Positions 18,617 through 52,699 of a DNA stretch of 64,000 nucleotides are shown piece after piece. This DNA comes from Utricularia gibba (lineage: Eukaryota; Plantae; Magnoliophyta), in NCBI GenBank assembly GCA_002189035.1, contig NEEC01000024.1, positions 806,001 to 870,000 of the forward strand, in the 5' to 3' direction. The position numbers and the translations under genes are program-made. Positions within the stretch are counted from its first letter, which is position 1, and the number at the start of each line of letters is the position of its first letter. The notes under the pieces were generated by a model, which was not told where the DNA came from, did not search any database, and was given only the letters and a program-made list of their open reading frames with translations.

Positions 18617-19939
18617 AATGATGCCTAGGTTCTATGAACATGAATCAAAATCAGCCTCATAAACAGATATATCAAGGCCCAAATTCACATGTTATGAGCT
18701 TAGGCCTTGATGACATGTTTCCAAAAAAGGAACATAAGGCTCTATTATCTTATCAACTTAAACTCATAGGGAGATTAGATATAGTATAGTGAAAATCACA
18801 TAGGAAGAGGTAAGACAAAAGAAAGTCATTCACATAGCATAGTAAGTGTGGTATGGACAACATGTTTAGTTTAACTAATACTACTCCCTACATAGACTCA
18901 ATGTTTAAAGAACTCGTAAAGACACTCTAGAAACACAAGGATTAATTTTTGCACCAAAAATGACCGGTAATGAGGTTCCTTCCCCAATGACTTGGATCAC
19001 AGCACCTAATCCTGTCTTTCCTCCTCATTTCCTGAAATAATTAGTGGTCTAGGCACTGAATGCAATGCAAAAAATCAAGAAGGCCATGTAGAGCAAGTAT
19101 GTAACCATTCAGAATAAAGTCTCACTAGAAAACATGAAGTATAGGCAGCAACACTAACATATCATGAGTCCATTAACTATGTGACCATTAATGTGTATGG
19201 TTGCACTCTCTTGATCTCAATAAGTTCAGTTTGGCAACCTTAGAAACGAAGATCAAAATGTTTCTTTTGGCTTTGGTCTTATGATACCAGTAGAGGGGTG
19301 CCACCCCCTTTACCAACTTCATATAGTTACAGCCCTTTTTTCCTTTCCTTTCAATTCCTCAACCTCATTCTATTTGGTGGCTAAATCTCCATAAGGATTG
19401 CCTCAAGCATGCTTGACATATAGGAATGTATATCCTGATAACACATATTTTTGAGTGTTTAGGAGTAGGAAAATGTCTAATATTTTACCACAAAACTCAA
19501 GTTCTAGCATGAATTTCTATGCTTTTGTGACTAGTACAACAGTCGTGCATTTTATTCCTAATTGAGACTAAAGCTCTGTTTGGAATTCATTCATTTAAAT
19601 TGCTTCAAAAAAGTATTTTTTTTTTTAAAAGCATTCTTCCAATAGCAAAAAGTGTTTGTTATACTTCAATTCTGAAAAATCTAAAATCTATTTGATAAAA
19701 TCAACTCTAAAAAGGTAACTTTTATTTTAATTACCATTTTACCCTTTTATATTTTAAGTATATATTAAAAAAATGAAAGACTATCCAAGTTATCCATCTT
19801 CTTTCTTAGGGTTTGTCGATTGGGCATCCACCTTCATACAATGAATTTTTCTTGGATTGAAGACTGTCGACACTTTCATTGGTAATGATCATTTTCAAAA
19901 ACTAATTATTTTTATTTCTTGGATTAATTTTCAGTAAGC

Positions 19940-21260
19940 TTGGAGAAAATGGTTGAAAAAATTGTTGCGAGTGTTTCATCGTTAATTGCTCAATGTTACC
20001 AGAATCGGATACGCATATTGCCATGTAAAACTAGGAAGTATTCGGGAGCTGAAATGTTAAAAGATTTGTTAAATGGAAATCCAATAAGATGCTACAACAA
20101 GTTATGGATGAGTACTCATGTTTTTCACCACATTTGTGAGTTGTTGAGAAGTTATTATGGTTTGAAACCTATTGGTAATCTTTCAATCATGGAACAAGTT
20201 GCTCATTTTCTTTAATATGTTGACCAAGCTCATAATCAGCATCACCTTGCTGAGGAATATCAGCATTCAAGTATGATATTTATTTAATATGCTCTGAAGT
20301 GTTTTTAGTAGGTATTTTGTGGATAAATGATTCATTTTATATAGTATAGCATGGACAATTAATAGATCAATACGTTCAGTTGCTCAAGCTTGTTTGAAGA
20401 TGTCTAAGGATTTGATTTATTTGTTTCGACCTCATAATATGACCCTCTGGAAATTCAAAATGATGATCGTTATGCTCGATATTTTCAGGTTATCTACTAA
20501 ATCTTAAACAATCTTTGTTGTTGATATCATGGTCTAATTTACTTCAGAGGCAATAGATGGCACTCATGTTGATGCTATCCTTCCACCTAAAAGACAGATT
20601 CCATTTATTTGGAGGAAAGGAAAACCGACTCAACATTATGGCTGTGTGTGATTTTAATCTTTGTTTCACCTTTGTTGCTGCTGATTCGGAGGGTGCAGCC
20701 CATGATTCACGTGTGCTTAATGCTGTCATTTTTTATTCACAATCTAGATTCCAAATGCCACCACAAGGTGAAGTGATTAATGCTTATTATAGTTATAAGA
20801 GTAATGATTCTAATGTTTATATGCTGGAAAATACTATCTTGTGGACTCTTGATATGCAAATAGGAAAGGATTTTTAGCTCCATATAGGAGGGAAAGATAT
20901 CATCTTCCAGAATTTCATCGAAATCCTTCAGTTAAAAATGGAAGAGAACTATTCAATTTCAAATATTCATCACTTCGAAGTTCAATTGAAAGATCATTTG
21001 GAATATGAAAGAAGAAATTCAAGCTAGTAACTAGCTTTTCTTCACACTTATCTTGGAAGACATAAGTTAGGTTTGTGATCATCACAATGGCTCTACAAAA
21101 TTTTATTCGAATCATGAATACTGATGATCTGGACTTTTTAGCTGATTTGGAAGAGTATGATGACCAAGATCCCATTGATGTTTCAAATGATAATCAAGAT
21201 GATTCAATGGATTTTTTAAGAGATATGATCCGAATGAAGATGGAAGCAGACAGAAGTTAA
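19940..21260 (+). pseudogene. PIF/Harbinger DDE transposase pseudogene
   Basis: AIDGTHV, NIMAVCDFNLCFTFV..EGAAHDSRVL, YYLVDS, FLAPYR and LRSSIERSFG motifs, with introns, stops and frameshifts. Confidence 0.88.
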
Positions 21261-21944
21261 AGGCATTTCGTTAGTTAAAATCTAGTGTTTTTCATTGTTT
21301 GTTTTTCAAAACTTTTTTATATGATAGCTACAATCTTATTTTTAGTTTCATCTTTTTGGATTTTTGTTAATAGTCTGTTGCTATATATTCTTCATTTGTT
21401 TAGTAGTTCATAAACATTATGCCAATGGAATTGTAGAAGTTTGAGTATTTCCTTTTAAACATCTCTTGAATGAAGTTTGAGTTCAAACCTCAGCTCAGAA
21501 GCAGTAGGTACATGTGTAAAACACCTCATGACAATCCCATGATAAGCCACTTGGTTATATGAAGAGAGCATTAAAGAAAAGCAAGGACAACATTGATTTG
21601 AAAGGGAACAAGTGTCTTCATATCAGAGCTACTCATCCTCTAAAGCAAAGTCCATCACATTGACTTTATCATTTGGTAGCATGTCACGATAGCAATGAGA
21701 AAGATGGTCAAAGCTCTAGTTTTCCTCCTAAGTACACCTTCCCACACTTGCTTTCCTATGACAAAATGAGCAACCCACCGCCAAATTCTAATCCCCTCAT
21801 TTAATATTATTTTTGTTACATGCTAGATAAAAAAAAACTATACATCAGCAGTAGACTCAAGTTTGAAATATGCATAATACATTATAATCAAAAATAATAA
21901 TAGTCACAAAACAATTCAAAAGTTCACAGATTATTCTTCTTCAT

Positions 21945-23181
21945 TTAAAAATAATGAATATCAAAATCATACTTTAGATAGCCTACTCTCTCTGCATTGT
22001 CTTTCGCTAACAACCAAATATTGTGTTTGGCTTCCACAGCAAACATTGACATTGCGTGCACATATAACTCACTCCCGAATGCAACTTCAGTGCAACTTTC
22101 TAAGATATCCAAAAATGTACTTATCTCTTTTTTCTCATGATCTCCAACAAACTTGTCTCTTGATGGCCCGACAACTTCTGCCATCTTCTCCAATGCCTTA
22201 GCAATCGCATTACATTCACTTGCCCTTGGACGTTTTTTTTGTTGGCTCTGGCTCTTCTAATAGGTGATTTCAATCCACTTTGGCTGCACGGTTGAGTTGG
22301 CGTGGTCTCTTGTGGCGAGATATCAATGTCGTCATCAAAATCAATGTTCTCAAAATCTCCAACTGTGCCTTTTTCTTCATCTGGTGAATTACATGAAAAG
22401 TGACCAGAAGTTGGATAAGCTACTGAATCTCTTGTCACCAAGATGTCATTAAAGGGAATTTCTTGCTCATCCATCAAGATAGTAGGACCTTTTTTATAGC
22501 ATCTCGCAGTCTTCTTAGCCTGTAACACAATTAGATCTTGACATTATGCTGAAGATTTTGCTGCTATATTATGCATCAATTTAAAAAAAAAAAATCCTAG
22601 ACTAAGCACGTATGAAGATAAAAAAATGAAAGTAAGAAGTTATCCATATTCTACAATTAAAAAAAATAATATCATCAAAAAATAAACCAAAAAACCATTT
22701 CACAATGAAAATAATTCCATCAATAATTCCACAACATTATATGTCACACATATGAATCAAAGCTTATTAAACACTACATGAGTACCTAACTTTTATAAAA
22801 AAAAAAAAAAAAAACCAGACTTGATTCAAGTGCATGTAGTTAATATACAAAAAACCAAAACATTACCTTCAGGTATTCAATCAACCAAGCATCCGGCATA
22901 TCAATGCCTCCATTAGGCTTAAAACCAATTCCAGTCTGTTTTGTCAACTTAACCCACACATCCCAACCGGTTTTCAACTTATCCCATTTGTTCCTCAATT
23001 GCTTTCGAGAAAAATTCTTACCGGATAAAGAATTAAAATTCGTAATGACATTTGCCCATCCTGTTTTATTGAAATTTTTAATAGACTTGTTTCCTACACG
23101 AACCTCTACAACACATACCCTAATAAAAAATTTGACCAATTTTGGATCAGCCCATAAAGCACAATCCTCATCTCCTTCCAC
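21945..23181 (-). pseudogene. PIF/Harbinger Myb/SANT-like DNA-binding protein (ORF1); start uncertain
   Basis: W.DPKLVKFFI...GW..V...FN..SG.NFSRKQLRNKWDKLKTGW..W..L..QTGIGF is the typical Harbinger Myb/SANT pattern. It also has the C-terminal F.....R..WL tail. Confidence 0.82.
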
Positions 23182-24038
23182 TGAACCATAAAATCAAGAA
23201 ATTTGGACAAAAAAGTTGGAATGAGAAAGAGGTGAGAATGAAGAAGAAAGAGAATTATGTTAAAGAATTACCAAGAACCCTAACTTGATGTGAATGTGAG
23301 AAATGAGGAAAAACATCAATATAAATGGTCACAAAAACCAAAAAGGGTAATCGGAATTTTATACATACGAAGCTTCCAAAATCTAAAAAAAGCTGGGGCA
23401 GAAGCTTCAATGTTTTTTTTGAAGCTCTCTGAAATTTTTGCTCCTTTTCTAGCAAAATTTTATACTGTTTGATAACAATTTGATTTTTTAAATTACTTTT
23501 TAAAAGGAGAATCACTTCCAAACAAATCTTAATTTATAATTTAGTCCCACCGTTAGTTTTAATTGTTGTTTGGAGCAATGCAGCAATTGTCAGCCAACTC
23601 AATTCAATAGGAGCCAAAAATAGCACAGTAAAATTGCAGAAGATAAGAATAAAAAGTTAAAGTAAGTACAATTAAATCCCAAGAAAGAGAAGAAAGGGAT
23701 TTTTGGAAATGATAGGAGAGAGAAGAGATATTGATCCTTGAACCTTGCGTCACACAGAAATTCCGGGGGGGGTGGAGGGAGGATTTGAAGAAAAATCGTA
23801 AGAACACACAAAAGAACAAGGAAGATGATTCAGAAGCAAAAAAGCTCTACTTTGAAGATTTCTTCCGCTCTTGAAGAACAATATTCCTAGTTTAGAACAA
23901 TTCCATCTTTACTATGTGAACTATTTACTTTTTCTGTTTCTGTTATGTACTATTTGTTGTTGTTTGACTTTGACATCAGAATGTTGCTTAGTATATGTTA
24001 TAAAAATGCTTTCTTTTCCCTTATCATGAGTAGCTAAT

Positions 24039-43771: not shown

Positions 43772-44925
43772 GAACAAAGAAAGGAGGTTTAAGAGACCAA
43801 CTGACAGAATACCATGTATGTCACTAGGGCTGGATAAATGCACCAGTACACTTGTAATGTCTCTACAATGTGAAGCTGATCTTCATTCAATACAGAAGTA
43901 ATGGCAGTTGAATCTGCCTATTGTATGCACATTATGTTTGGCGTTTGAGATGCATTCTGCTTTATGTACAAAAACAAGGCTCCGCACTTAACGAAGGAAA
44001 CAACTTCAGGAAAATCTTGTTACTCAAGACTCTCCAGGATTCATCATTCTACACAGAAATGAGTCCATCAACTAAAGAAGGGTTACTTTGAATAATAATC
44101 ATTTTTTTATTTTTCAAATTTGAAAAATAATCATCATTTTAATTTTTCTAAAAAATGAACATCTCAAATAGAACTTTTTAAATTAAATGATTTTACCTAA
44201 ATTTAAAAATTAGATAAATTCATCAATAATACATTTATATTTTACATTTTATTTTGAATTTTAAAATTGAGATAAATAACACTAAATATATTATCTCAAT
44301 GCTAAAATAAACGATTTTATATTTATTATCTTTATTTTAATCATATTTTCAAAATTAGTGACAAATTTACTATTTTTTGTATTAATCTATACAATATCAA
44401 AAAATATTATAAAATACATAAGTTATACCGGTCAATTATTATACCTCTTAGGGCGCGTTTGGTTGCTGAGTTTAAGTGGGTTGCGGCGTGAGTTTAGATA
44501 TAAACCCATGTTTGGTTCGTGGGTTTCAGGTGAGTAAAAATAAACCCATTTGTTGACCATAAACCGGGCGGGAACTCGTGGAGTTGGGTTTAGCTAAACC
44601 TAGGGGGGAGGGGGGTCGGTTTAACTAAAACCCAGGTCGGCACTTCCATTTTTGCCCTCGCATGAACTACATTTGAACGCAGATCTACAACCCAGATCTA
44701 CATTCTTGATTTGTCGATGGCGAAGCATGTTCTTTAGTGCAAAAAGGGTGGGTCTTTCCTTAAGTATGATTTCTGTTCTTTGTGGGTTGGTCCACGGTGA
44801 CACTGCGAAGGCCAACTATAGCAGCACCGCATAGTGGGTTTTTATCTGTAAATTTCCAATTTCAGAATCTATAGTGCTGTGTGTGTGGATTTATTTTGCT
44901 CGATTTTTGCGACTGTTGAGGGGAC

Positions 44926-46271
44926 ATGGATTTTTTCACGGAAGGTCATGTCATCTTGAGTGCGGCAGTGGCAGTTTTGACCGAATACTTGGTGCAAATG
45001 AATGTGTTAGTATACTTACATTGGAAGAAATGCCGTATGGGATATAGGGTGAGACGCAGGTATTCACTTACACACAAGATTCTTAGACAAGTTGAGTATA
45101 TTAGTAGGTTGGTGAGTGATGTGAATAGCGCATCCATTAAGAATTTGAGAATCAGCCGAGATGCCTTGGGTATTTTATGTAGCCTATTAGAAAATCATTC
45201 TAACTTAAAGACTGGAAAATATGTAACGGTACTAGAGATGGTTTGCATGTTTTTAGGAATATTAGGTCATCATAAAAAAATGCGGGTGCAAAAGCATGTA
45301 TACGGGAGGAGCACCGAGACACAGTCTCGATGCTTTCAAAAGGTGTTGCATGCGGTGCTTTGCCTCCATGAGGTGCTGTTAGAGAGCCTAGTAGTTGATG
45401 CAGAACGTGCATCAGAAGGAAAGTTTAAACACTTCCAGGTTGACACATCTTTCATGCTTCTTTTAACGAATGTGTATCCTAAAATTGATTATACATTTGC
45501 AGGGTTGTGTTGGGGCCATAGATGGTACATACATCGGTATACGAGTTAACAAATGTGATGCTACAAGGTACAGAAATCGAAAGGGGGTGATATCCACCAA
45601 CGTGTTAGGTGTATGTGATGAACATATGAAATTTATATATCTGCTTGTTGGGTGGGAGGGGTCTGCTACAGATAGTCGGGGTGCTAAACGATGCACTCTC
45701 ATGATCCGACGGCTTCCGTGTACGCCCAAGTATTTCACTTGTTTAGCCCGTGCGCATGTGATTCCAATGATTTTATGCACCATGTATACGTGATGACACA
45801 GAAACATATTACCTGTGTGACAATGGATACGCCAATAGGGAGGGCTTTTTGGCACCATACCGTGGAGTTTGTTACCGTGTGAAGGAGTGGGGACAGGGAA
45901 ATGGAGCACCCTAGAATGCGAAGGAGCTATTCAATATGCAGCATGCATCAGCCAAAAATGTGATCGAATGAGCTTGGGGCTTGATGAAGATGCAGTGGGG
46001 TATACTACGGGCAGCTAGCTACTATTCGGTAGACACACAGAACCGCATTGTATTGGCATGTGCTTTGCTCCATAACCTCATTCGAAAGGAGATGGTGGTC
46101 AATCCCCTGGAGGATTAGGTCCCATTGGACTTTCATGATGAAGCTAGGGACACGAGTGATACAGAAGACGTCACGACATCTGCCGGAGGCAATCAGGCAT
46201 GGAATAGTTGGTGTGACCAGCAAGCTGAGGGGATGTACACCAAGTGGCTGGCATCCCGCAGACGCCGCTAG
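44926..46271 (+). pseudogene. PIF/Harbinger DDE transposase pseudogene (3 exons)
   Basis: GCVGAIDGTYI, RYRNRKG..STNVLGVCD, VGWEGSA.DSR, YYLCDNGY, GFLAPYRG and NVIE motifs. +1 G at 45678-45681. Stops at 45702, 45912 and 45969. Confidence 0.93.
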
Positions 46272-47117
46272 TGTAGCAATGCTTTAGACATTGTCATGCT
46301 AGTGGTTTTCCTAAATTCCCGTTCAAAACCTATCAAGTCGTTTGTACTGGATTTGCTAAGCACAACTGTTTGCATTGCAAAGTCACAGCAATTTAAGCTC
46401 TAGTTGATACTCCATCTTGAACACCTGTTTCCATTGTATTTGGTGGTTGCTGCAAAAATTGTTGGGATTGTACCGTAGTGTCATGTCTTACCATGGGGTA
46501 ACATTGTACCACATGGTGGATCATTGGAGCCAACACCGCGATCCTCAGACGAGGTTCTACGGAGGCTTCTACGACACCAAAGTTGTTAGCAGCACCATGT
46601 GTTTCATCGTATCTGGTGCTGTCAAAAATTAAAAAGTAGATGAGTGTGAAGTTGGTGCATAGTAGTGAGGGTATTTGGTAGTTCAACGATGCGCCATTTT
46701 ACTCTACATCGCGATCCGTAAAATCAGGTGCTTCTAAACGCATGGGCTATGCTGTGCACACCACTGCACCGCGTGCTTTGTAATCTGGTGCTCTGAGTTT
46801 TAATAACAAATTGGCATAAAATATTGCAGTTATTCAGCATTAAATGAGTTGGGCGGTTGACAACTGCCCAAACCGCCCAGCGCTATTAATACCCCCCTGC
46901 GCACAATAAAGGCACCTGACATTGAACACTTTCCAAAACAGTTTCATTAATTCCGCCCATCCAACTCCACCCTTTCGACAACCACGCAGCAGCACTGCGA
47001 AGACAGTCTCATTGACAACCTCTCAAGAACAACGTCCCGATGGTAGGATTTATTTGCCCTAAGCGTTTCAAATTCTTCGTTGCCATCGTCAAGTAAGTTT
47101 TCACTTGTTTTCCATAG

Positions 47118-48913
47118 ATGTTGACGTGTGAGAAACTACGTGCCCGCTTCTCAATTCCCGACGGTTACGCTATGTGGAATAAACAACCGGGTGAAACGTT
47201 CGATGGCGAACCGCCATGCAGAGTTGGAGCATCGGGATTCGCCATTAGCACTGAGCACTTTCGGTGTGGATTGTGACTACCCCCGCCCCCTTTCTTGGTG
47301 CAGATACTTGCTGCACTCCAGATCCCACTCTCCCACCTCACACCACGTTCTGTGGTGCACGTACTCGCATTTATGTACATCTGTGAAGAGGAGGATATAC
47401 CCCCGGAAATGCGTGTCTTCTTTGCTGTTTCTGTTTGTGTGCAATGTAAGGGGAGTCCGCACTATTCGCTTCATGGAAAACCTGGAGTGGTTCTGGTTAT
47501 AGACGTGAGAAGCACATATGATGATTGGTGGACTAGTTTTGCATGGGTATGCCCACCCACCGCTACAGAATGGCCAACAACATTGAGAGTTTCAGAGAAT
47601 GTCGGACACTCATCAGGTGATCACAAACAATTACTTCGGATATTCTAATAGTACTCATGCTTTTTGCTGTTGTCATTGTAGGTATAGAGGTATTGTCAAA
47701 CGTGCAGCAAGGAGGTTTGTGAATTTGTTCTCTTGCAGAATAAAGTCACTGGAGGACGTATTGCCCCCCTTTCTGAATGCCCCTAGGAACAGCATCTGTG
47801 GTGTGGAACCCCTCGACATCGTAAACAACGTAGGAGTACGAATGAAGATCTTGAGGAGGTGACCCATGAAGAGGATGAAGATGTGCAGCCAGAAGTCAGG
47901 GGCAACACGGATGGGCCAACATCGATCTGGACACATGACGATGGGTGCGGTGCTGCCACTGCAAAGTATATCGAAGTGGAGAGACTGTACGCAGAGAATC
48001 TTGAACTCTGTGGTCGGCTTGCATGGTATGAACAAAGGTGGCCATATGGTGGAGTGTCGAGTGATAACACAGCCCCACCACGAAAGTTGTTAATATTTGA
48101 CGTGAATGGCGTACTTGCGCACATTGTGCATCCTCGCAAAGTCAGGTGGCAAGTGCTGAAGCTGGATGCCGTCATCTACGGGCGAAATGGTAATGTGGTT
48201 TATTTGACTCGCATTTAATATTTGGGGTATGTGTTAGTACTATTTCTTGTGGTTGTAGTGTATCTTCGACCAGGTGCACGTGAGTTGATACAGTTTTGCA
48301 TGGAGCACTTTGACGTCGCCATATGGTCTTCAAGAGGACGGTAAGATTGACCACCTTGGTGGCAAGAGGATCCGCATTCTTGCTGACATTTTTTTTTTTT
48401 GACAATATGTGTTAGTGAACAATTGCACGATGTGCTTCAGTGGTTACTAGGGCCTGCAGTAGCCATCAAGCTCGTCTTCCAATGGGATGGATCCAGGTGT
48501 GTGGACACAGGTTATCCGATGCACGACAACAGGAACAACATGGTTAAGCTTAAGCTTTTGAATCATGTATGGGGCATCAACACCGAGTTCAAGGGCAAAT
48601 ATCACCGTCTTAATACGCTACTCATTGATGATGCATCGTGCAAGTCACTACACAACCCGGTGAGTTTCTGGTCACGCCCATTCTCCACCATCTTGCATCC
48701 GATGATTGTTTACTTTCATTGGACAGCCCAAAAATGCCATATTCCCAACCACCTTCAAGTACACCGCTGGTTCGAGGGGGAGATATTAGGTCGTTCTTGG
48801 AAGCTCTCGTTGACAACATGGATGTACCCATGCACATCGATCGCCGTCGGGTAGGTCAACGTCCAATAGACAAGGAACACCCATTGTGGAAGCATTACAA
48901 GACTATTGTGTAA
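47118..48913 (+). pseudogene. Transposon-borne chimeric gene: PF04195-like N-terminus, acidic/coiled-coil linker, HAD/NIF (FCP1/SCP-like) phosphatase domain
   Basis: N-terminus LRARFSIP..F.CGL*LP.PPFL..IL..LQIPLSHLTPRSV..VLAF..ICE...IPP.MRVF..Y..W. C-terminus KLLIFDVNGVL, VYLRPG..ELIQFC.EHFDVAIWSS, FQWD..RC.DTG, NTLLIDDA..KSLHNP and GGDIRSFLE.L..VGQRPI..W..Y. GT-AG introns. One stop at 47274 and at least one frameshift. Confidence 0.82.
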
Positions 48914-49380
48914 TCGATGATGCACCTTTGAAATTGCATGGATCTTGCGTGAACTATCATATGCTGACCTTGTTAGTTTTTGATCGACCACTGATCATGG
49001 TGGAACCGCATGTTGTAACATCCGGTGCCATCACTAGATTTGAAACCTTGGGTCTAGACGTGGTGCTTCGTAATATGCAACACCAACGCAATGCTAGTCC
49101 ATCACTACTCGATAGCACCGCACTGAATGTGGTGGTAGTTGCAGCACCGCATTTGTGGAAGAGTGCTCAAGAACGAAGCACCGCGCTTGTTCATATGCGG
49201 TGCTTCCACATACAAAGTCAGAACACTCTCTACCCTTCGCAGTGCTCATACTAGTTACATGTAGTCATCCTTCGCCTATATTTTCATGTGAAATACCATA
49301 TATTTGCTTAAAGGATGATTAGAAGATGAAAAACATCTAGTCCATGAGTCCAACATAAGGCGAAGCACCGCACAATAGAT

Positions 49381-50425
49381 TTAAGATGTACATTCGGATG
49401 CTAAACCACACACAATAAGCTCTCTTTCACAGTCGCTAGAGGCAAGGAAGTAGCGCAACCTCGCAGGGTTGGAACTAATCATCTCTGCTATGGTAAAACG
49501 TTCGATGGCAGTTAATTGCAACGGCATACCTCTAATGATCTCCCCTGCCTGACGCTGATTGTCCACCAACTCCTGCGCTTGCTGCACCACTGTTAATCCC
49601 AAGTGACGTAGCTCTTCGCATGTGCGCACGTTCAGCTCCTTCATTTCTTTGATGAACTGCACATCATCATCGATTCCCCTCGGTCCCCTACCATTTCGTC
49701 CAGTCCGCCGCGACGAGTCAGTGCTGTTGTGTGACTTAGAGTGCCTACTAGGTGTGACGTTCACACCCTCTGCAGCACAATCAATTGGGTCACAAGGTGT
49801 GTCAACATACGAGAAGTTCATATCCTGTCTAGTGCTATCCAGGTCCAGAGGGCAATCCGAAGAGACTTCCAGATTCTCCCCAACATCTTCCGTGAATTTC
49901 CTCTTCCTGGTCGCGGCTACATAGCTCATTGTTCTATCTCCTGTAGCCCGATCCTTTCCAAAGATTTCCTACCACTCCATGTAATACGGCCACGATTTGT
50001 GTCTTAGGACGCGCAGCCTGGGAGCATGCTGACATAAGAACACGGTAAGCACCGGATATAACATAGCGAGAATAGGGCATACGTACCTGATCAATCTCCT
50101 TCCAAACCTCCTCGTCTGCGGTGTTGGACAGCTCACTGAAACCGGTGCCCGACCTTGATAAAAAATCTATAAGGAGGTAGTAGTCTTATTTCCAGGTATG
50201 CACCTTGCTAGATATATGCGGGTGTGAGCGGATGTCGGTTTTAGGGCAGAGTTTCAAGAACTCTGTCTCCAACGCTCGGTGATACCCACCCCTAAAACCA
50301 TTCTCGATTTTCCAACCTTCTTTCACTATCTACTTCAAAGCGTGCAACAAGTCTTTCTCCTCATCTGGCTTTTAGGCGCATTTTGTTTTTTTGTGAGAGT
50401 CTTCCACCACGATTGGGCTGTGCAT
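49381..50425 (-). pseudogene. PIF/Harbinger Myb/SANT-like ORF1 pseudogene (exons ~50425-50087 and 50028-49381)
   Basis: KPDEEKDLLHAL..GWKIENGFRGGY..LE..PHISSKVHTWK..SG.GF, then KSWPYY.EW.EIFGKDRATG. C-terminal LT..ER..AEMI..P.RL.YF. Several stops. Confidence 0.88.
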
Positions 50426-52699
50426 ACCTGCAATCTGTGCTGGAGAAAAGAAAACAGCAAGAACAAAGCACCTACACTGAGCACTTACAACAAGTAAACC
50501 CTAAATTCACTCAAAATTCAATGGATTTCAAACAAGAAACTCTGCACAACGAAGAGAGTATACAATCTGGAGTTAACCCATGGCTCTTCACTCTCAATTA
50601 CTTGTGAAATCGGGAGATCTTGTCGACCGGCAGCACCGCGTCAACCAGGTGTGAAAGTCGGTGGACAAAGAGGAAAACAAACGGTAATAAAGAGGAATAG
50701 TTTATTGTTGAGGAAGGCTATATTGGTAAATTTCCATGAAAATTATCCATAAACCCAATTTTATACCCACCTACCAAACGTGGGTTCATTTAAACCCAAA
50801 TAATGTAAACCCATCAACCAAACACGATTTATACACCCTAAACCCATAAAACCGGGTTACCTAAACCGAAATAAACTAAACTTGGGTTTAGGCCAAACCC
50901 AGCAACCAAACACGCCCTTATGATTACAAAGGATCAATAGACATTCTTGCGATTAAACCAATAATTCAAAGAATATTATAAAACAATTTTATGATGAAAG
51001 GATATATATTATGCATTAATTTAAAATTCAATATTTTTGTCGTTTTTTAAATAAAAAAAATAAAAGGCCATACTTAGTGATATAACCGACATCCAATATT
51101 TTTTTAACTAAAATACACTTTACACTAACTTTTAGATAAATTGTTGAAATATAATTAAATTATTTCATTAAATTATAAAATAATTTTTTAGTTTAATGGT
51201 TTAATCAAAATATGTGTATTAATCTTTTTTGTAATCAGAAGACATATAATAATTTATCTATTGTATCAGAATTTTTTTATATTGCACACATTAATATGAA
51301 AAATAAGGAATTTGTCATCAATTTTGAAAATGAATAAAAGAATAATAAACAATAAAGAACCATTTAGTTTAGAATTGAGGTAACATTTTCGATATTATAT
51401 GTCTCACTTTTGAATAAAATAAGATATCTGAAATTTATTTTAAAATTTCAGATTAAAATGTAAATTTGTTCTTAATGAATTTATCTAATCTTTAAGTTCA
51501 TGCAAAATCATTTATTTTTAAAAGTTATACTTGAAATGGTTATTTTTCAAAAGAAATTGAAGGGATAATTATTTTTTAAATTTGAAGAGTGAGAGATGGT
51601 TATTATTCAAAGTAACCCTTTGAAGGAGACAATGGATTTTGCCTTCCAAGTTTTGATTTTCATGGAAATTCTTGTCAATCCATTGCCATAGACTCAGAAA
51701 GAATCTCAAGATGAAAGCTTGCGACATAGCAAGATAAGTTGATGTTGGTTTAGTAGCTTACACAAGGAAGCTACCCACCTCTGGTGAGGTGGGCCAAGTT
51801 GGCATCTTCGTTTCTTTCAATTCCTGAATTGATGAAGCTCAGGGTATGCTGTAGTGTTCGATGAGAGAATACTTCGACTTCCACCATATACGTCACAGAC
51901 ACAACCTTTGGTCAGATATTATATGTTCTAATATGCTATATCTCAATAGTTTCACACTTTTCCCGAATGACGTAACTTGATCACACCCAGATGATTCGAT
52001 GCCATTAACATACTTTCAGAGCTTGGATTAAAAATCAATGAATGATGCAGAGGCTAAAGTCAAGAACCATTATTCTAATCAATGGCATGAAGTGGGAGAC
52101 TGAAGAGAGCACCCAACCATGCTAGGGTTCGCCTCGCAGCTTTTGAATCCCCTTGATGGTATTCAAAGTCGTAGTTGTTTTGTATGTACATGGAAAACTC
52201 ATAGTACCTTTGTACCATCCCTAGAATACATGGCCTTTCTCAAGCTCATATATGAGTTGCAGAAGACGGGGCAATATGCTAGTTGTTCAAGATAGAGCAT
52301 ATACATTGACAAATGTGTCTACTTCCCCTGTTTGACATGGATATATCTGCAATTTCCAAGCATCCATCCATTTGAGCATCACCTGATCCCTCTCGAGGAG
52401 CTTGGACCAGTCATTTTTGTAAACAAGTTCTGTTGTGAGCTTTTATGGAAGGTTACTTCTATAGTTGAAGTCCCAACCAAAATATTTTCCTGCACACAAG
52501 GGACAAGGGAAAATTGCATATTGTACTAATTATATTTCACATTATTGTACGTTATATCCAAAATTTGACAAATTATATTTCATGATCAAATCATTTTAAT
52601 TGGGATCATGTCACTTCTACATGCACCTTATGTTCGTTACTTACCCCTAATTTTTACCATCATAAACATTTAACATATTTGATGTAGTTTGAATTTCTT

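Follow-up and report, generated by a model that had tools for sequence, protein, structure and literature searches.

PIF/Harbinger, a superfamily of DNA transposons, has been surveyed as a group carrying two open reading frames (ORFs) (PMC4482050), and an element of this superfamily with a third gene is described here from a 64,000-nucleotide stretch of the Utricularia gibba genome (GenBank assembly GCA_002189035.1, contig NEEC01000024.1, positions 806,001 to 870,000 of the forward strand; this whole stretch is referred to as the window, and its coordinates are used throughout). The element, at positions 44451-50917 (6.5 kb), is like canonical plant PIF/Harbinger (PIF/Pong-like) elements in having terminal inverted repeats (TIRs) which start GGGC...GTTTGG, a TWA duplication, a DDE_Tnp_4 transposase together with a probable Myb-like ORF1, and subterminal repeats, but differs from them in that an intron-containing gene of approximately 1.8 kb (referred to as the cargo) lies between the two core genes. 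An earlier note on this DNA, made from the sequence alone, had proposed a three-gene PIF/Harbinger transposon with a chimeric cargo of PF04195-like and NIF-like parts between the transposase and the Myb-like gene, and this proposal is supported by the results presented below. The third-gene arrangement widens the known anatomy of PIF/Harbinger elements; in the literature, no paper was found which joins Harbinger or PIF with NIF, FCP1 or a third gene.

The domain at the N-terminus of the cargo, TRP28 (PF04195, Transposase_28), has been described as the antisense ORF that is the hallmark of Retand retrotransposons, where it is kept in 97% of Retand clusters; its function is unknown, DNA binding is predicted, and no similarity to it was found outside transposable elements (TEs) or in other known TEs (PMC11963269). 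The cargo N-terminus was found to match PF04195 with a score of 33.7 bits (cut-off 26.2) over 47277-47645 (profile positions 14-62 of 69), so that what had been assigned by eye now stands above the Pfam threshold. In common with the TRP28 antisense ORFs of Retand/Tat elements, the cargo has the same Pfam domain, is borne by a TE and is unneeded for the chemistry of transposition, but it differs from them in its DNA transposon host, its fusion to a NIF-like domain and its multi-exon structure. As it lies within PIF TIRs, with neither long terminal repeats (LTRs) nor pol nearby, the cargo is not a Retand antisense ORF. A structure prediction of the TRP28 piece using AlphaFold2 without an alignment was unusable (predicted local distance difference test score 49.6).

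The C-terminal part of the cargo, which had been proposed as a NIF/FCP1-like member of the HAD phosphatases, gave three co-linear signals on three separate exons. Exon 3 matched PF03031 (NIF) with 18.3-19.5 bits (E ~0.001-0.002; cut-off 21.8) over 48258-48341 (profile positions 35-62), the end of exon 2, which carries motif I, had NIF clusters as its nearest language-model look-alikes (0.90, 59 of 100 hits) followed by other HAD phosphatase families, and exon 4 likewise had NIF clusters as language-model look-alikes (0.91, 95 of 100 hits). Each signal is weak alone, and it is unlikely that all three would hit the same one of approximately 25,000 families by chance; the C-terminus is assigned as NIF/FCP1-like because of this co-linearity. 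The proposal is upheld to that extent, but no single piece reaches the PF03031 cut-off, and a search of PDB sequences with the three NIF pieces returned no NIF chain.

Many SCP1-like NIF proteins are encoded in Arabidopsis and are uncharacterised (PMC8774115). When the cargo was compared by eye with FCP1/SCP1 (NIF, PF03031) phosphatases, the HAD motifs were seen to follow in the same order (the Asp of motif I, a Ser where motif II lies, a Lys and LLIDD), but motif I reads DVNGV and not DxDxT (its nucleophile Asp remains, with Asn in place of the second Asp and Val in place of the Thr), and the cargo further differs in its sub-cut-off scores, its location on a transposon and its fusion to TRP28. 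In HAD phosphatases the second Asp of DxDxT is the acid/base catalyst. With Asn at this position the cargo protein would be expected to be a binder or a very slow enzyme and is probably not an ordinary phosphatase.

The cargo (47118-48913, plus strand) was modelled as five exons (approximately 509 codons) separated by four introns of 67-75 nt, all of which are bounded by GT..AG (the model was checked by script) and are richer in A+T (54-67%) than the exons (50-53%); the introns have been retained, as had been stated previously. Once bridged across two indels, the frame comprises 510 codons and ends at the TAA at 48911. The cargo lesions of this copy are an in-frame TGA at 47274, a TAG at 47784, a 1-bp deletion and a 17-bp deletion, which corresponds to approximately 2.6 lesions per kb of coding sequence compared to approximately 4 per kb in each core gene, in agreement with the earlier note, in which the cargo was judged to be decayed about as lightly as its neighbours. 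All three genes are defunct in this copy. No second cargo copy or other TRP28 was detected within the window by tblastn of the read-through cargo (with X at stops and N at indels).

Three DNA runs of two studies provided contigs which were placed on 45100-51050 at 80% likeness or more and were used as evidence of counts and positions, not of depth or copy number. A total of 1,126, 1,362 and 3,357 contigs was placed in the three runs, with 30 of 30 bins covered in each, and the contigs of all three runs cover each of the three genes alike; the cargo thus recurs in other copies. In run X1 the number of contigs per listed position was 5-17 for the transposase, 2-16 for the cargo and 6-17 for the Myb gene, and approximately 16% of the contigs were at least 99% alike to the window, 22% were 95-99% alike, 36% were 90-95% alike and 26% were lower. 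At position 50918, ten contigs of run X3 and 13 of run X5 continue into flanks which are unlike that of the window and mutually unlike (agreement 0.49), which indicates many insertion sites and places the boundary exactly at the end of the TIR. The cargo belongs to a high-copy PIF/Harbinger family and has been carried by the element to many insertion sites.

The reading favoured here, held overall with moderate confidence, is that of a family-level three-gene element whose cargo was captured once and had a possible accessory role. The parts of this reading differ in strength: the family-level, single-capture anatomy is very probable, while the claim that the third gene ever served the element is put at slightly below even. 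The cargo would have entered one founder element once, at the DNA level, and would then have multiplied as part of the element. Pack-type transduplicating elements are non-autonomous and bear fragments of host genes; the locus is unlike them in that the element has its own transposase and ORF1, and its cargo is a complete gene which has a start, introns and a stop. PIF/Harbinger elements have been described as two-gene transposons, and a high-copy family with a third, spliced gene broadens this picture.

The ends of the element were re-found as first described, with both TIRs and both TTA trinucleotides of the target site duplication (TSD) in place. The TIR pair was reported by a repeat finder as 24 nt at 92% complementarity and was read by ourselves as 23 nt with 2 mismatches, and a pattern search of the window (up to 3 mismatches) gave only the two element ends and no further TIR-like site. 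The left 300 bp hold 5 AAACCC/GGGTTT motifs and the right 300 bp hold 6, compared to 2 in the middle 5,867 bp, and this terminal clustering is the subterminal repeat pattern usual for such elements. The G+C content is 45.7% in the element versus 31-36% in the flanks.

PF04195 is otherwise known from Retand elements, and the cargo could on that account be a fragment of another mobile element, such as a Retand side-gene region, which landed in a two-gene PIF. If this were so, a bracket of repeats around the cargo might be looked for; no TIR, LTR, direct-repeat pair or duplication was found flanking 47118-48913 (the best pairs are of 15-23 nt at 72-93% and are scattered), and the possibility raised in the earlier note that the cargo is bounded by its own TIR or LTR and TSD found no support. 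There is also no gag, pol or LTR signal, the gene continues from TRP28 into the NIF-like domain in one frame, and both spacers beside the cargo are covered by contigs in all three DNA runs, like the rest of the element. Nested insertion is considered highly improbable and was rejected on the ground that no repeat pair brackets the cargo.

The core genes flank the cargo in the convergent layout also seen in a second PIF of the window (19572-23529), which is approximately 4 kb long compared to the 6.5 kb of the three-gene element. The second PIF has two genes and no third gene, and its core pair was recovered (Myb_DNA-bind_3, 53 bits; DDE_Tnp_4, 20.9 bits), which bears out its previous description as a two-gene element; no DNA similarity was found between the two elements. 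The transposase of the three-gene element matched DDE_Tnp_4 with 29.3 bits (cut-off 24.8) on 45470-45790, with a co-linear match of its C-terminal piece (18.1 bits on 45972-46115), and its frame, when read through, is shifted by +1 near 45678 and broken by stops at 45702, 45912, 45969 and 46116. The frame of the Myb-like gene is interrupted by stops at 50372, 50330, 50186 and 49969. A Pfam search of all pieces of this gene gave no match, the nearest look-alikes of its central 47 residues were Myb_DNA-bind_3 clusters (0.88-0.89 by language model, just below the level at which a result counts as more than a lead), and its product was not significantly similar to the Myb protein of the other PIF (BLASTP E 0.33). 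Its position, orientation and look-alikes are in keeping with the Myb/SANT gene named in the earlier note, but with no Pfam match the identification is weaker than was stated there; from its layout, orientation and look-alikes rather than from any hidden Markov model (HMM), it is likely a Myb/SANT gene. At 50007-50079, one contig in each of the three DNA runs was observed to swap 71 bp around the intron of the Myb gene for 19 letters, which indicates that this region varies between subfamilies. In a further run, guessed to be RNA, one contig of 716 nt lies unspliced on the Myb-like gene (49500-50209, minus strand, approximately 90% likeness) and may derive either from the transcript of a related copy or from DNA present in the library. 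The coordinates of all features of the element are given in Table 1.

Table 1. Features of the three-gene PIF/Harbinger element and its target site, in window coordinates.
Feature	Coordinates	Strand	Basis
Left TSD, TTA	44448..44450	.	identical trinucleotide at 50918-50920
Left TIR	44451..44473	+	repeat-finder pair, 92% complementary
Left subterminal region, AAACCC/GGGTTT repeats	44474..44750	.	motif count
Transposase pseudogene, approximately 3 exons	44926..46271	+	DDE_Tnp_4 profile, frame reading
Spacer upstream of cargo, presumed promoter-bearing	46272..47117	.	contig cover in all three DNA runs
Cargo exon 1, TRP28 (PF04195) domain	47118..47616	+	profile match, scripted gene model
Cargo exon 2, HAD motif I (DVNGV) behind an acidic and helical linker	47690..48189	+	gene model, NIF look-alikes
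Cargo exon 3, NIF core (motif II region)	48259..48340	+	PF03031 profile, gene model
Cargo exon 4, NIF-like, LLIDD motif at end	48416..48659	+	NIF look-alikes, gene model
Cargo exon 5, natural TAA stop at 48911	48727..48913	+	gene model
Spacer between 3' ends of cargo and Myb gene	48914..49380	.	holds 5 of the element's 10 GCACCGC motifs
Myb-like ORF1 pseudogene, 2 exons (~50087-50425, 49381-50028)	49381..50425	-	frames, look-alikes
Right subterminal region, AAACCC repeats	50618..50894	.	motif count
Right TIR	50895..50917	-	repeat finder, pattern search; contigs exit at 50918 into unlike flanks
Right TSD, TTA	50918..50920	.	

Comparison of this copy with the contigs separates lesions which are private to it from those which are shared, and it is mainly this map which the present dead copy adds. 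Other copies carry an extra A behind 47697, where this copy is one base short at the start of exon 2; with this A and an acceptor at 47689, cargo exons 1 and 2 join in frame. At 48768-48770, three X1 contigs read 20 letters where 3 are present here (a 17-bp deletion with a loose end at 48767), and with the 20 letters of the other copies exon 5 is open to its TAA. The stop at 50186-50188 in the Myb-like gene is TAA in this copy and AAA in nearly all other contigs (50188 A>T). That the 1-bp deletion, the 17-bp deletion and the Myb TAA are all absent from other copies points to an ancestor which was open at those three sites. Of the 40 differences with the best support, 18 run from C/G in the family to T/A in the window and 4 run in the reverse direction, an excess which puts this copy mostly on the derived side, through deamination-type decay. 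The stops had been attributed mostly to CGA>TGA or CAG>TAG changes; the spectrum is indeed mainly C>T and G>A and several stops fit it, but comparison with other copies shows one stop of the Myb gene to be AAA>TAA, and deletions make up two of the cargo's four lesions.

Searches for relatives of the cargo gave no database homologue. A HMMER search of 47787-48215 against 1.84 billion representatives found no relative, the sole match being spurious (a bacterial repeat protein which matched the short word WT.DDGCG ten times). Word-based searches with NIF exon 4, the TRP28 piece and the transposase N-terminus, which were limited to proteins of 0.55-1.75x the length of the piece and are silent on full-length fusions, returned none; an exact look-up of five ORFs found none of them in the collection, and metagenome contigs, scanned once by DNA pattern and once as protein, gave nothing. 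The blank result for the motif I piece in a search unrestricted by length speaks against the cargo being a conserved host gene that was copied recently.

These blank results are shared ground with a rival explanation, in which a chimeric gene or pseudogene was taken up once by the founder and hitch-hiked to high copy number without ever being beneficial. This is a real possibility, if a doubtful one, and it draws on most of the observations which weigh against the favoured reading. One of these is a 47378 C>G change, present in 9-20 contigs per run, by which cargo codon 87 (47376-47378), inside the Pfam-aligned TRP28 domain, is TAG in most other copies and TAC in this one; the main burst may have spread a cargo which was already closed at this codon or, alternatively, this copy may come from a minor lineage which never had the stop. 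In addition, all six cargo codons altered by best-supported differences in this copy are changed non-synonymously (6/6), which is what neutral decay gives. No intact cargo copy was seen among the contigs of the three DNA runs, no homologue was found in the searches above, and no cargo transcript was seen in the run guessed to be RNA, which gave three contigs less than 90% alike, none of them on the cargo. Motif I does not fit the DxDxT signature and has no acid/base Asp. Two further points count against the favoured reading: the NIF score lies under the Pfam cut-off on every single cargo piece, and the transposase frameshift is common to most copies, the extra base at 45678 being missing from only a minority of contigs, which suggests that most copies moved in trans and carry little information on selection. 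On these grounds (the codon 87 stop, and the lack of an intact copy, homologue or transcript), the suggestion in the earlier note that the cargo may have been a working part of the element was not borne out.

The account of the cargo as a mere hitch-hiker is itself opposed by a frame which is complete across five exons, by the three lesions of this copy (two in the cargo, one in the Myb gene) which other copies do not have, and by the N-terminal domain, which is a TE-specific accessory domain and not a host domain (PMC11963269). The cargo is furthermore far from all database proteins, yet its separate exons can still be recognised by HMM and by language model, a combination which fits long evolution as coding sequence better than recent capture. 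Should the cargo nevertheless have been a passenger, it would follow that an autonomous PIF can take an extra gene of 1.8 kb to very high copy number.

If the favoured reading is followed to its weakest step, the cargo would be an accessory factor regulating how the element itself is expressed or silenced: TRP28 would target the protein, the NIF-like domain would interact with a phosphoprotein (the RNA polymerase II tail, for instance), and the protein would stay out of the cut-and-paste chemistry. VANC of VANDAL21, a Mutator-like element, is an extra element-encoded protein other than the transposase. The cargo resembles VANC as an element-encoded non-transposase protein; the analogy, drawn in the earlier note, is functional, and a sequence relation is not expected. 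An anti-silencing role for the cargo, or one at the C-terminal domain of RNA polymerase II, is by this analogy a speculation. For TRP28, which nearly all Retand retrotransposons have kept, the fusion provides a first hint of function, as the NIF-like domain joined to it has relatives acting on the tail of RNA polymerase II. A working protein would join VANC as a second kind of factor by which plant transposons manipulate their host.

A broader proposal, which we regard as unlikely, is that TRP28 is a portable accessory module which has moved between LTR retrotransposons and DNA transposons, fused in this case to a catalytically altered NIF domain to give an element-encoded factor that would influence either how the RNA polymerase II tail is phosphorylated or silencing at the copies of the element itself. 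Under that proposal a heptamer, GCACCGC, might be the binding site of the cargo factor. Ten occurrences of the heptamer (extended form AGCACCGC[A/G]) were counted in the element, compared to 0.5 expected from the element's own dinucleotides, and none of 2,000 simulations reached 10. The ten sites span 44824-50639, with five in 49115-49371, and only 4 are present in the other 57.5 kb of the window; sites lie upstream of the transposase and Myb genes and are clustered in the spacer which follows the cargo, and two of them form an 8-bp hairpin (49177-49205). GCACCGC is put forward as a candidate cis-element.

Outside the element, a 61-nt inverted repeat (82% complementary) was observed at 44345-44405 and 51271-51331, approximately 50 and 350 bp beyond the PIF ends, and the three-gene PIF seems to have inserted within a short A+T-rich inverted-repeat element of approximately 0.5 kb.

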